DNA of 64,000 nucleotides from Blastocystis sp. Blastoise (taxonomy: Eukaryota > Protista > Bigyra: Opalinata). The stretch lies in contig JBBPEB010000009.1 in NCBI GenBank assembly GCA_039096225.1, forward strand, positions 806,001 through 870,000. The letters are read 5' to 3'. The notes beneath the pieces are model-generated. The model worked only from the letters and a program-made list of their open reading frames with translations, had not been told where the DNA came from and searched no databases. Each line of letters begins with the position of its first letter. Within the stretch, counting starts at the first letter, position 1. The translations under genes and the position numbers were made by a program. Below, piece by piece: positions 16,428 to 32,517 of the stretch.

Positions 16428-19400
16428 ATGTTCTTTATACAGATTTGCATTGATGGCAGATGGATACAGCAACCTCTGGTATCATTTGAAACGAGTTGCA
16501 TGGAATTAGCCCAGTACATTAGTGTACGTTTTTTATTATAGCCTTCTATCTATGTCTAAAAATTTTAATTCTCTAGAATTATTATCGTGTCCCACTGAAT
16601 GAACAATTATGGCAGATCAATAATCGTTTTGTAATAATTCAAGGTAGTTTAAACTCAGTTGGCCTTTATAATAATTCTTTTCTTACTGTTGTTAGAAGAT
16701 CTGAATATCTTAAAACTGCGAATTCTGTAATAGAAATTAATTTGAAGATTTCTTATAATGGAAATCTATTCGATCAATCATGGTTAGCATCAACAACAAT
16801 CAAGGAGATTGTTGATCACACTGAAAATGTATATATTATTGTTATTATTATTCTATCTTATTTTTATGATATAGTTTTTAAGAAATTACAATATTTTTGT
16901 AAATCCGATGGCATTATGGTATAACAATCAATACTTAGATGAGATCAAAACATTATACGATTATTCTATATGTGAAAATACAGTTCTATATGTCGTTCGT
17001 AAATTAATCCCTCAATCTGTATTTATTTGTTTTTTTGTTTTAATTAATTTTTATTTTTTTTTTTTTATTTATTTCATTTAAATTTTATTTTATATTTTTT
17101 TTTTATTTTATATTTTATTTAATATTTAATTTATTTATTTATTCTTTATTTAATTATTCTTTATTGAATAATTCTTTATAATATACATATATATACTTTA
17201 ATTCTGTATATAATTTTATTCTAGGTTCCCTCTCCTCAGAGTAATAATCCCTTACCTAGAAAGTTATCTTCCCCTCAACTTTCTCCTAGTCTCTTACCAA
17301 GTCGATCTCCATCACCAGATATACATATACATATAAATATATCTTCACAACCTAGTGAAGAAAGAACATCTTCACCAGAATTACCAATAAATATACTTTA
17401 CACTCAAAAAGAATCTCCTAAATTAAATACTATTGCTTCTCCTGAAATATCTCCTAAATTAGGTATTCTTGCTTCTCCTGAAATATCTCCTTTAGCATCT
17501 CCCTTAGCATCACCAACATTATCTCCAATAGTTATTAATTCTACACCATTAAATCCTTTTATTTCTAACGGTTCTTCTACAACTAATACAGATAATAATC
17601 ATATTATACAAGATTCGGAACAAACAGGATTAACATCTATTTATATAGATAAACAAACACAAGTTACTTCTTCTATTATTCAAGAAACAGAAAAAGAAAA
17701 GTCTATGAATGATAAAAAAGTATATCTTAATATTATTATATTAAATATAATTTATTTATATATTTAGACTATTTATATTTTCTATGAATATGCAAATAGG
17801 GAATTAATTCAAATTCCTTACACAAATCAAACACCTAAAGAAATTATTCAATTGATTATTGTATATATACTATATACATATTTCATTTATTTATTATATA
17901 CTATTATTTTTATTTTACTTATTATTGCTTTTTATCTATTATATATTATTATTTGAATTTCTTATTTAATATATAATACTTATGTATATTATAAACCATA
18001 TATTTTTAGGAGAGAGGTCCTTCTTCAGAATCCATTAATACACAACATCTTAAGTTTATATATAATAAAAGAGAATTCGATGAAAACACAATAATTAATA
18101 ACGAAAACGATATTAGTATCAAAGTCTTTATGGTATTATATATATAAAAATATTAATATTCTCTTATATATATATCATTCTTTCAATATCACTCTTGTTT
18201 TTTAATAACTTAATTATATATAGATACCTACAATTTCAAATGAATATATAGAAAACCATGTTACTCTTTTCGGTATATATATAATATATATATATATATA
18301 TATATATATAATAATAATAATAATAATAATAATAATTTTATTCTCCTCTATAGAATCTCAAAGAGATAATTCTGAACAATTTGATAAAAATATGATTCTA
18401 AAATATTGTGTTAACTGTATTTATTTATTTATATACATATTATATATTATTATTAATGATTATGATATATAGATGACATGCCTGAAAAATGTTCATTTGA
18501 TTTCATTCAATCATTTATTATTAAGAATTCAACAACATTTCCATATTTATTTATTCAACGTATATATATATATACATTTATTTCTATTTTTATTTGTGAT
18601 ACTATATATATACTCTTCTATTATAGGTACTGATTATCTTAAACTTATATATGGTATATATGAAGATAATGGAAATATAAAATGGAAACCATATGCTATT
18701 GTTATTCCTCTGTTTGGTATATATATATATATATTCTTTTATATTATTTATATATATTATTTATATATATTATTATTATTATTATTATTATTATTTATAT
18801 ATATAGAGGATATCGACATGAATCTTGAAGAAACAGATGAAAATAAAAAGAATTATTTTAATTTACCATTTAATACTATAATTAAAGAAATCAGAGTCAC
18901 ATGTATATATATATATATACTTCTTTTCTTATTCTATATATATAGTACTTGAAGATGATATTGTTCCCGATGATTTAACGGATAATTATCGTAATAATTA
19001 TGAAGAACAACAAAAACTTTATATTGATCGTTTACCTAAAGAAGAAAATATTCATGTTTATATAGATAATCGTAATATATCTTCTCTTGTTAATATTATT
19101 CCTAAAGATTTCGCGATTGATCGTGAAGATACAGGTATATATATTCATTATTGTTATTATTAACATATATATTTACAATAATAATTATTATTATTTTAAA
19201 TTTATACTTATTCTATTTCTTTATTGAATAGGTATTTTTATGGCATTATATGATAAAAGAATGTCTAATACGATAATAGATGTTCAAAGACTCAAAACGA
19301 AAATAACATTCACAAATATATCCACAAAAGATTCTAGAACTATTTTAGATTCTTCTCTTTTTCATGGTTTATCTTCTATAATTCAAGATGAAGAATTTAA

Positions 19401-31400: not shown

Positions 31401-32517
31401 ACCTCCTCAGAATACTATTCCATTTGATAAATTAATGAGTTTCTCCATTGAACCACAAAATAAAGAAATGATCAAAGAAATTAATAATACAAAAGGAATC
31501 TATGAACGACTTGCAGGTAAATTCAATTTATTAGCAATGAAAAAAGGTGAAGAAAAGAATTATAAAGGTAAACAAGCAGATGCTGATTATGATTTTGCTA
31601 AAGACGGATCTCTTAAAGGATATAAAGTATTATTTGTGTTACTCTACTTACATAGAGATGGTCACGGTGATGACAATATTACAAAAGAAGTTCTTTTATA
31701 TGGAGATCCAAGTCAAAAGGTTAAAACTTCACCTGCACTTATTTTAAAGCAGAAAGGGGTTGATGTAGATGTTGTTACAACGTATGGAGAAGCTATTCCA
31801 ATGTTGAAATCAGGAAAATATAAAGCGTGTTGTATTACATGTTCTCCTGGAGATGGAATATTCCCTGGATCTAATGATACATCAGAGTTTGGACCATTTT
31901 TAAATACTGTTTATACTTATAATAAATGTGGTGGCAGTATCATGTGGATGTTAGATAATTGGCCATTTACATATGAGGCAGATATGTATTATAAATATTT
32001 TTATGGGATCGATCAGTTATCTGATCCAAATAAAGAGCCATATGGTTGCAAATATATGAATATGGATAAAGATAATACAAAAACAGATGCAGATTTACCT
32101 CATTCATTTATACAAGTCGGTTCAGATCCACGATATGTATTAGATGAACGATTATTGAAACTTCATACTGGTATTACACAGATATATGAAGGTGAAACAT
32201 TGGCTGCCTTTAATGAATCAGCATTAAAGAGAATGGGATATTTTACATTTGCAAGAGATACAGAGGGAAATCCAGCAATGATGATCAAAGTAAGTAAAAA
32301 TGATGAAGGTCATGTTATTATGGATAGTGCATATACTAAACTATATTGTGAATTTAAAAAAGATGAAACAGAACGATGGATATCTAATAGTTTCTGTTGG
32401 TTATTACGAGCTGAATTAGATATTATTGATGATATTAAACCTGAAGATGAATGTAAGATGTTTTATGATGAGAAAAAGAATGATAAGAAGCTTTCTATAC
32501 ATTTTCAAAAAAGATAA
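16428..32517 (+). CDS. Giant midasin-like AAA+ protein with N-terminal ubiquitin-like domains, two VWA-like domains and an extra C-terminal domain
   Basis: Twelve GT-AG introns between 16.5 and 19.2 kb splice in frame into the terminal exon 19232..32517. Walker A motifs GTTSSAKT, GPTNSGKS, GAPGIGKS and GPSPSGKS, plus two degenerate modules. Repeated GPL/LLDE/HPDFR.. midasin-type motifs. Confidence 0.85.
29242..29361 (+). repeat. (AAT)n poly-Asn tract (40 N) in the giant AAA protein
   Basis: 39 AAT plus AAC in frame, just before the acidic region. Confidence 0.9.

Follow-up and report, generated by a model that had tools for sequence, protein, structure and literature searches.

A predicted giant AAA_5–VWA protein of Blastocystis with ubiquitin-type domains at its N-terminus

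The 64,000-nucleotide (nt) stretch of Blastocystis sp. Blastoise DNA analysed here, which we call the window (contig JBBPEB010000009.1, positions 806,001 to 870,000), carries at 16428-32517 a giant gene whose predicted product resembles midasin (MDN1/Rea1) and begins with ubiquitin-like (UBL) domains of its own. The MIDAS domain of midasin pulls in trans on the UBLs of Rsa4 and Ytm1, and the locus therefore raises the question of what a protein that combines a midasin-like machine and UBLs in one chain might be: an artefact of exon prediction, the organism's own midasin, or a machine of another family. Our analysis supports a single gene, and the encoded protein appears to be a member of a multi-copy, unnamed and apparently undescribed family of giant AAA_5–VWA–GATase-like proteins (GATase, glutamine amidotransferase). 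The arrangement that an earlier note had read from the sequence, namely one gene with three UBLs, six AAA modules, a long linker, two VWA domains and an extra domain, was confirmed overall, and its interpretation held in part: a single gene and a separate midasin-like family stood, the acidic region proved vestigial, the MIDAS of the midasin-like VWA proved degenerate, and a role in defence found no support. Gene coordinates below are positions in the window on the forward (+) strand, and ORF residues follow the numbering of the large open reading frame (ORF) of 4425 codons.

The window uses the standard genetic code, none of TAA, TAG or TGA interrupting the 4425-codon ORF, and rebuilding the gene from sequence reproduced exactly the 12 small exons and the end coordinates proposed for it earlier. 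The locus is predicted to be one 13-exon gene running from an ATG at 16428 to a TAA at 32515-32517 through E1 (16428-16523), E2 (16577-16828), E3 (16875-17018), E4 (17225-17719), E5 (17768-17860), E6 (18010-18132), E7 (18224-18272), E8 (18354-18416), E9 (18473-18559), E10 (18627-18716), E11 (18807-18902), E12 (18946-19134) and E13 (19232-32517). The 12 small exons, spanning 16428-19134, join in frame to the 4425-codon ORF and yield a predicted product of 5020 amino acids (aa; 15063 nt, 5020 codons), 595 residues beyond what the large ORF alone encodes. All 12 introns have GT..AG boundaries and end in TAG, and 11 of them start with GTAT; they are 43-206 nt long, with a GC content of 3-25% compared with 21-39% in the exons. 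Junction phases are consistent throughout (six phase-0, six phase-1), and none of the split codons creates a stop. The GC content of the window is 20-31%, and in its GC (23%), its long introns and its true stop codons it agrees with Blastocystis from tortoises, whose genomes are described as having 21-23% GC, long introns, abundant low-complexity sequence and genuine stops, unlike the human subtypes (PMC10690189).

Homology follows the same path as the splice sites. Each exon was searched singly, with 200 shuffles per exon, against the closest homologue, a hypothetical protein of 5255 aa from Blastocystis sp. 'Blastoise' (P0001) that is 49% identical over the AAA ring and 47% over the C-terminus. 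Exons E1, E2, E3, E6, E10, E11 and E12 each beat at least 197 of their 200 shuffles and match P0001 in colinear order, at residues 4-34, 36-82, 124-161, 413-436, 524-551, 555-587 and 584-641, respectively. The in-frame splicing proposed earlier is accordingly consistent in its phases, its uniform splice sites and its colinear matches. Exons E5, E7, E8 and E9 encode 16-31 aa and are uninformative singly, and E4 is of low complexity; with only 16-84 aa per exon, most Pfam and PDB searches of exons taken singly gave nothing. P0001 itself has the same order of UBL, UBL, S/P linker and UBL, with UBLs and ring in one annotated product, and the genome project behind it used RNA sequencing besides annotating genes (PMC10690189). 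In a metagenomic relative (P0002, locus L002) a segment resembling E10-E12 and the AAA ring lie in one uninterrupted ORF, so that the assignment of E10-E12 to the ring is independent of any splice prediction. An alternative in-frame ATG lies 54 codons upstream (16266-16427), preceded by a stop at 16224. The alignment with P0001 begins at the position of 16428, which favours the ATG there as the probable start.

At the N-terminus, the first two UBL units are predicted as clear ubiquitin-type domains and the third as a probable one. UBL1 (16428-16699) consists of E1 and the first 41 codons of E2, with the intron 16524-16576 inside it, and UBL2 (16724-17003) of the end of E2 and E3, with the intron 16829-16874. 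E1 and E2 tile P0001 residues 4-82 with z scores of 6.7 and 8.4 (0 of 200 shuffles), and the E3 match to residues 124-161 reaches a z score of 14.5. In P0001 the first 170 residues form two tandem UBL units, both of which are tiled by the window exons (E1 with E2, and E2 with E3); its residues 33-73 match the Pfam ubiquitin family PF00240 (E=4e-7, 30.1 bits against a gathering threshold of 25.4), and its single-domain PDB matches are ubiquitin variants and, weakly, the Rad23 UBL. Residues 14-44 of E3 align without gaps to ubiquitin 43-73, with a Trp at the Ile44 position and V-V-R-K in place of LVLR, and the same Trp was found by eye in UBL1, in the P0001 UBLs and in the UBL of a smaller protein, P0103, described below. 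Single-domain PDB matches to ubiquitin variants have E-values of 7e-5 to 2e-3 for UBL2, and up to 3e-2 over the searches made exon by exon, and E3 alone matches Pfam ubiquitin weakly (E=0.18). Very low E-values to polyubiquitin, obtained for P0001 and for window exon sequence, were discounted as sums over repeats, each repeat contributing about 5-6 bits. The probable UBL3 (17768-18132; E5 and E6, with the intron 17861-18009) is the weakest of the three: its length and pattern fit a UBL and E6 matches P0001 residues 413-436 colinearly (3 of 200 shuffles), with ubiquitin-like matches of the P0001 counterpart below threshold (E=0.7-0.85; iE=4.1 to a UBL profile). Of the three UBLs claimed earlier, two are supported by colinear homology and by the PF00240 match of P0001, and the third is probable by its pattern and the colinearity of E6. 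The peptides quoted for these units are present, LWYNNQYLDEIKTLYDYSICENTVLYVVR in E3 and HLKFIYNKREFDEN in E6.

The type of these domains bears on what they might do. Pfam at E<=0.1 reported only ubiquitin and Ubiquitin_5, and not the NLE family, for residues 1-700 of P0001, and chains of Rsa4, Ytm1 and NLE1 were absent among the PDB matches of its N-terminus. By sequence, chiefly that of P0001, the UBLs appear to be of the ubiquitin type (PF00240) and not NLE domains like those on which midasin pulls. As a terminal Gly-Gly is missing from every unit, they are taken as built-in domains and not as modifiers. Between UBL2 and UBL3 lies the phase-0 exon E4 (17225-17719), bordered by TAG|GT.. splice sites, a Ser/Pro-rich linker that is probably disordered, as its composition of 31 Ser, 22 Pro and 14 SP motifs in 165 aa suggests; the earlier claim of an SP-rich linker is borne out by these counts, and P0001 has an S/P/H-rich stretch at the equivalent place. 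The SP motifs, some of them near-repeats (ASPEISP..), are candidates for proline-directed phosphorylation of this tether. An N-domain precedes the ring (18224-19701), composed of E7-E12 together with codons 1-154 of the large ORF; its E10-E12 portion is colinear with P0001 residues 524-641, and no Pfam family matches it.

The ring itself comprises six AAA modules, as proposed earlier, detected by a profile iterated on the window protein, its relatives and midasins; Pfam places AAA_5 in five positions, module 4 being too degenerate, and NCBIfam gave generic AAA matches only. AAA1 (19702-20283, ORF 155-348) has Walker A GTTSSAKT and Walker B LLLDE, matches Pfam AAA_5 at E=1e-13 and the iterated profile at E=4e-47, and is the module that best matches midasin in the PDB (6or5, E=2e-30 over the whole protein); its sequence also matches CbbQ, NorQ and CobS. 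AAA2 (20572-21165, ORF 445-642) lacks Walker A and has a degenerate Walker B, its Pfam AAA_5 match (E=1e-8) missing the first 24 profile positions. AAA3 (21406-21921, ORF 723-894) carries GPTNSGKS and IIDH, the latter without the catalytic Glu. AAA4 (22207-22923, ORF 990-1228), again with no Walker A and a degenerate Walker B, is without a Pfam match but reaches E=1e-13 to the iterated AAA profile, and midasin AAA4 is its closest partner by hhalign. AAA5 (23260-23847, ORF 1341-1536; GAPGIGKS, ILDE) and AAA6 (24250-25038, ORF 1671-1933; GPSPSGKS, LIDD) likewise pair best with midasin AAA5 and AAA6. A charged low-complexity insert at 24637-24849, K/R-rich and then D/S-rich, splits AAA6 and is mostly absent from P0001. 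Modules 1, 3, 5 and 6 retain Walker A, module 1 with an A for the second G, and modules 2 and 4 are degenerate, in agreement with the earlier description; a Walker B 'DE' is present only in modules 1 and 5. In unrooted profile-profile comparisons with 13 midasins, the odd modules (1, 3, 5) resemble odd modules and the even ones (2, 4, 6) even modules, both in midasin and in the family. This likeness fits a triplication of an ancestral two-module unit, and it suggests that the family ring and the midasin ring share a six-module ancestor.

Behind the ring, a linker of about 1400 aa (25039-29241) belongs to no recognisable family: no Pfam or NCBIfam family matches it, and profile comparison with the midasin linker gave no similarity (hhalign probability 0.04, from rough underlying alignments). 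Within the family the linker is conserved, at 26% identity to P0001 over 1284 columns. It is followed by a flexible tether (29242-29640) containing a run of 40 Asn (29242-29361) and a 49-aa patch rich in Asp/Glu (D/E) and Lys (29494-29640). The patch is 47% D/E and 24% K/R, and the highest D/E content of any 200-aa segment of the ORF is 21%. All 13 canonical midasins compared have 349-843 residues in segments with at least 30% D/E before their MIDAS, and a comparable D/E region was found in none of the 16 family members examined. The acidic region reported earlier therefore corresponds to this short mixed-charge patch after the Asn run, which is vestigial and not a midasin-style D/E region.

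No VWA domain was reported by Pfam in the C-terminal 1000 aa, whether searched whole or in pieces, and the domains appear only with a family profile and a structural model. The AlphaFold (AF2) model of ORF residues 3440-4425, built from 39 aligned sequences, has a mean predicted local distance difference test score (pLDDT) of 88 and a predicted template modelling score (pTM) of 0.84, and Foldseek ranks PTMP1, a protein with two VWAs, first among its neighbours (547 aligned columns). Model and Foldseek together agree with the two VWA domains and additional globular domain proposed earlier. VWA1 (29884-30456, ORF about 3549-3739) shows the beta-alpha alternation of the fold in the AF2 model and the motif DVNVS..SDC, and has weak profile matches to the human MDN1 MIDAS (8ql1_A, E=1e-3) and to the integrin alpha-X I domain. 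VWA2 (30562-31356, ORF about 3775-4039) resembles the midasin MIDAS, including an extension before beta-1, and matches the TRAP VWA at E=1.4e-5 and the Rea1 MIDAS (6qt8) at E=4e-5. The 6qt8 alignment covers the pre-beta-1 segment, PNKxT..G..KIF..R.Y..D.S against TPTQSTK..TGKRLN..KIWMRR..RAYQ..DDS, so that the parallel drawn earlier between the ORF segment LQPNKP..YCISLVIDCSYN and the midasin pre-MIDAS segment is real. Further Foldseek neighbours of the C-terminal model include the NorD VWA, the MDN1 MIDAS/NLE1 UBL complex (8ql1) and the Rea1 MIDAS alone or with the Rsa4 or Ytm1 UBL (6qt8, 6qta, 6qtb). The MIDAS of VWA2 is degenerate in the window protein and its closest relatives, reading DCSYN and TNG where most of 38 relatives have DxSxS and TDG, and VWA2 is not terminal, since a domain region of about 380 aa comes after it.

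That region includes a class I glutamine-amidotransferase-like (GIFT/ThuA-like) domain at 31609-32436 (ORF about 4124-4399), which modelled alone reaches a pLDDT of 88.8 and a pTM of 0.86. Its Foldseek matches (E=3e-5 to 1e-2) comprise the IFT52 N-terminal domain (5fmr/5fms), STM1381, STM3548, the ThuA-like 4pxy and GATase domains. The entries 5fmr, 3soz, 2gk3, 5fms and 4pxy fall at E=3e-5 to 2e-4, and the best matches (E=3e-5 to 1e-4) have template modelling (TM) scores of about 0.5-0.58 on the target. None of 42 members has a Pfam family at this domain, and their invariant or nearly invariant columns contain no Cys or His of a catalytic Cys-His-Glu triad; the domain is probably a binding or scaffold domain and not an amidotransferase. 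The stop codon TAA (32515-32517) falls where the first strand of the third VWA of P0001 would start. P0001, P0003, P0004 and P0103 possess this third, terminal VWA with an intact MIDAS (DCTGS), which Pfam recognises as VWA_4 in P0004. Downstream of 32517 we found no remnant of it and no extra exon (32478-34090, 1.5 kb of AT-rich sequence), and the third VWA seems to have been lost in this lineage. With the third VWA absent and the MIDAS of VWA2 degenerate, the window protein is left without any canonical MIDAS site.

The C-terminal module also defines the family. A profile of it searched against 1.84 billion representative proteins gave 1473 matches at E<=1e-3, of which 151 reach E<=1e-30; many are giants of 4200-6400 aa that carry the module close to their C-terminal end, and six-module rings were found in 16 members. 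Identity of the module to the window protein ranges from 17 to 47%. The named members come only from the stramenopile Blastocystis or metamonads (Tritrichomonas, Kipferlia, Aduncisulcus, Dysnectes, Chilomastix), all of them anaerobes, and their annotations are hypothetical or automatic ('AAA+ ATPase domain-containing', 'Midasin'). Blastocystis 'Blastoise' has four giants or large fragments and the small P0103, and Tritrichomonas musculus and T. foetus have several each. Full-text literature searches yielded background only and no description of the family. Within the family the ring and C-terminal module are constant and the N-terminus varies, some members starting almost at AAA1, and among the giants only P0001 and the window protein have UBLs; the family seems to swap its N-terminal heads. 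One Tritrichomonas musculus member (P0223, M9Y10_037836, 6157 aa) has a protein kinase domain at residues 16-290 instead of UBLs. Three proteins of about 1000 aa from the human subtype Blastocystis ST1 (NandII, JDR; P0079, P0226, P0229) seem to match only the VWA1-VWA2-GATase-like module.

P0103 (WA158_006295, 657 aa) is encoded in the same Blastocystis sp. Blastoise assembly (L003:9115-11320, contig JBBPEB010000017.1, GCA_039096225.1) by a compact 2.2-kb gene between two kinase genes, its neighbours being unrelated. It comprises one UBL, the GATase-like domain and the MIDAS-intact third VWA, has no AAA ring, and is 79% identical to P0001 at the C-terminus. From its domain order, this layout looks like that of a UBL-cargo adaptor.

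Two rival readings concern the identity of the locus. According to one, the gene model is an artefact in which E1-E6 form a small gene of their own upstream and translation of the ATPase begins close to or at the ATG at 19240. The exon chain is a prediction, the large ORF has its own ATG at that position, and E5, E8 and E9 have no significant homology singly, all of which would suit such an artefact. Twelve consecutive in-phase introns, nearly all GTAT..TAG and with no stop at any junction, speak against it, as do the absence of an in-frame stop after UBL2, E4 and UBL3, the homology of E10-E12 to sequence contiguous with the ring in P0002, and the presence of UBLs and ring in one annotated product in P0001; we consider the artefact very improbable. 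According to the other, the protein is the organism's divergent canonical midasin, acting in 60S maturation and decorated with lineage-specific domains. This would account for six AAA_5 modules with a midasin-like odd/even alternation, of which modules 4-6 pair best with midasin 4-6, for the long linker, for a MIDAS-like VWA with its pre-beta-1 extension and for midasin as the best PDB match, and one family member is indeed auto-named 'Midasin' in UniRef. It is hard to reconcile, however, with at least four giant paralogues in a single Blastocystis genome and several in Tritrichomonas, a multi-copy status that argues against a single essential pre-60S orthologue. The D/E region common to all 13 midasins is absent from the family, the linker lacks similarity to the midasin linker, and the MIDAS is degenerate and not terminal. 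The lid families PF17865, PF17867 and PF21108, listed for true midasins among the homologues, are absent from the ORF (Pfam, E<=0.01) and from P0001-P0006, and a separate 'midasin-like protein', of unchecked identity, is annotated in Blastocystis (PMC9896827). We regard a canonical midasin as the least probable identity of all, with a very small chance of being correct. The earlier suggestion that the protein is not a ribosome factor is, on these sequence comparisons, the likelier reading, since the family is multi-copy and distinct from canonical midasin.

How a giant of this build might work can be outlined by analogy with better-known machines. Nucleotide turnover in the ring would move the linker, as in midasin and the MoxR-VWA pairs (PMC3495828). 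Complete Walker A and B motifs occur only in AAA1 and AAA5, and AAA3 and AAA6 would probably only bind or slowly hydrolyse nucleotide. Movement of the linker would pull a client held by the VWA/GATase-like module, the protein acting as an extractor or remodeller and not as a transport motor. The UBLs would serve as a non-cleavable handle by which the machine attaches to ubiquitin/UBL receptors, the proteasome above all, and extraction would thereby be coupled to degradation or quality control. We tentatively prefer this picture of an ATP-driven VWA extractor whose UBLs dock on ubiquitin/UBL receptors such as the proteasome, and give it somewhat less than an even chance. Docking on such receptors is the usual job of N-terminal ubiquitin-family domains, and the role is preferred because the UBLs are ubiquitin-type and N-terminal, have a long flexible tether and keep a bulky hydrophobic side chain in the middle of the ubiquitin interaction patch, and because P0103 looks like a UBL-cargo adaptor. 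Several points weigh against this picture and the gene model beneath it. The exon chain is predicted from genomic sequence; UBL3 was significant in none of the sequence tests on E5-E6 or on its P0001 counterpart; and the ring comparison, confined to midasin and this family, is unrooted, so that 'midasin-like' is not a rooted phylogenetic statement. Proteasome docking would follow from the general behaviour of N-terminal ubiquitin-family domains, and the known ligand of a midasin-type MIDAS is a UBL, which favours a pairing of the UBLs with VWA domains in cis or in paralogues.

Such a pairing, the main rival to the preferred picture, strikes us as possible but somewhat unlikely. It would make the UBLs cis ligands, or pseudo-substrates, of the protein's own VWAs or of those of its paralogues, like the Rsa4, Ytm1 and NLE1 UBLs for the midasin MIDAS, with auto-inhibition, head-to-tail assembly or hand-over between giants and small UBL-VWA adaptors as the outcome. 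Autoregulation, decoy and proteasome targeting, the functions suggested earlier for UBLs in cis, are candidate roles. The extension of VWA2 is specific to the midasin MIDAS, the structural neighbours include the complexes of the MDN1 MIDAS with the NLE1 UBL and of the Rea1 MIDAS with the Rsa4 and Ytm1 UBLs, and the fusion of UBLs to VWA modules in two 'Blastoise' genes (P0001, P0103) is a hint of the Rosetta-stone type; the long S/P tether, moreover, would let the UBLs reach back to the C-terminus. Yet VWA2 has altered MIDAS ligands (DCSYN, TNG), and the terminal VWA that retains its MIDAS in P0001 and P0103 is absent, which together weaken a metal-mediated cis UBL-MIDAS lock for the window protein, and the ubiquitin type of the UBLs, with no NLE-family signal, also tells against it. 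A role in defence had also been raised; the protein would then be a conflict or defence NTPase, and its family a fast-diversifying sensor-effector system in gut protists whose N-terminal effector or signalling heads vary. The family is multi-copy and lineage-expanded, its N-termini vary and include a protein kinase, its members diverge strongly in the C-terminal module (17-47% identity), and those with names are restricted to host-associated or anaerobic protists. Against this, no effector domain (nuclease, protease or pore) was found, and PADLOC returned only a match at the P-loop level, a weak negative given that PADLOC covers bacterial anti-phage systems alone. Copy number and variable heads are what the defence proposal can draw on, and we judge it quite improbable. 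A wider extension of the preferred extractor model would add the family to dynein and midasin, the textbook cases in eukaryotes of a complete AAA ring made from one chain, as a third and unrecognised branch of single-chain six-AAA mechanoenzymes. Such a branch would extract VWA-bound clients and have spread in anaerobic protists, both metamonads and Blastocystis, possibly by transfer, and the UBL fusion in Blastocystis would add a MIDAS-UBL relay to degradation, in cis or between paralogues, with giant ATPases and a small UBL-GATase-like-VWA adaptor as partners; taken as a whole, we think this unlikely.

The remainder of the window offers little context for the giant gene, as an evident functional link to it was seen in none of the neighbouring ORFs. 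A Na_H_antiporter gene lies upstream (13202-14830, minus strand) and a small DUF5808 membrane protein downstream (34763-35275, plus strand). Family matches on the minus strand further identify a diacylglycerol kinase catalytic domain (3311-3883), a mitochondrial carrier (38908-39948), a MatE transporter (51625-53199) and a BTB_2 protein (58523-59566). Two other Asn-rich low-complexity ORFs on the minus strand (4232-5605 and 53799-54968) cross-match the NNYGNN repeats of P0001, in keeping with the abundance of low-complexity sequence reported for the genomes of tortoise Blastocystis. The opposite strand of the giant gene carries nothing beyond low-complexity noise.

Since the named members are all anaerobes, genes may have been transferred among anaerobic protists, or an ancient origin may have been followed by loss. 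The family offers natural experiments on the coupling of ring, linker and VWA, and a test case for the UBL as a built-in handle or proteasome tag on a motor. It also bears on the role of very large uncharacterised ATPases in widespread gut protists, Blastocystis and the trichomonads among them.

Among known systems, midasin is the closest in plan, sharing a single chain of about 5000 aa, six AAA_5 modules with odd/even alternation, a long linker, a flexible tether and the VWA extension. The window protein differs in having two VWAs and a GATase-like domain where midasin has one terminal MIDAS, and in carrying ubiquitin-type UBLs in cis, whereas the UBL partners of midasin are of the NLE type and reside on separate substrates; to our knowledge, the binding of a UBL by the MIDAS domain is the only substrate grip known for midasin. 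Intact Walker A sites lie mainly in modules 2-5 of midasin, and in modules 1, 3, 5 and 6 of the window protein. The MoxR-class AAA+ systems (NorQ/NorD, CbbQ/CbbO, CobS/CobT) likewise combine an AAA_5-type ATPase with a VWA substrate adaptor, and the NorD VWA is among the best structural matches, but those are bacterial one-module homo-hexamers with the VWA on a separate protein, and here everything is joined in one eukaryotic polypeptide. Sacsin and Rad23/Dsk2 resemble the window protein in placing an uncleaved, unconjugated ubiquitin-family domain at the N-terminus of a protein-handling protein; the window protein differs from them in having no UBA, Hsp90-like, DnaJ or HEPN domain, three UBLs instead of one, and a midasin-type ring. 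With the IFT52 GIFT domain, ThuA-like proteins and class I glutamine amidotransferases the C-terminal domain shares its fold, though not the sequence family or the catalytic Cys/His. RNF213 and VWA8 also have several dynein/MoxR-type AAA modules per chain, together with a link to ubiquitin in RNF213 and a VWA domain in VWA8; going by their descriptions, the window protein presumably has neither the E3 module of the former nor the mitochondrial layout of the latter. Midasin-like and MoxR-like AAA+/VWA machines are thus familiar, and what appears to be new is the architectural combination in an apparently undescribed family.

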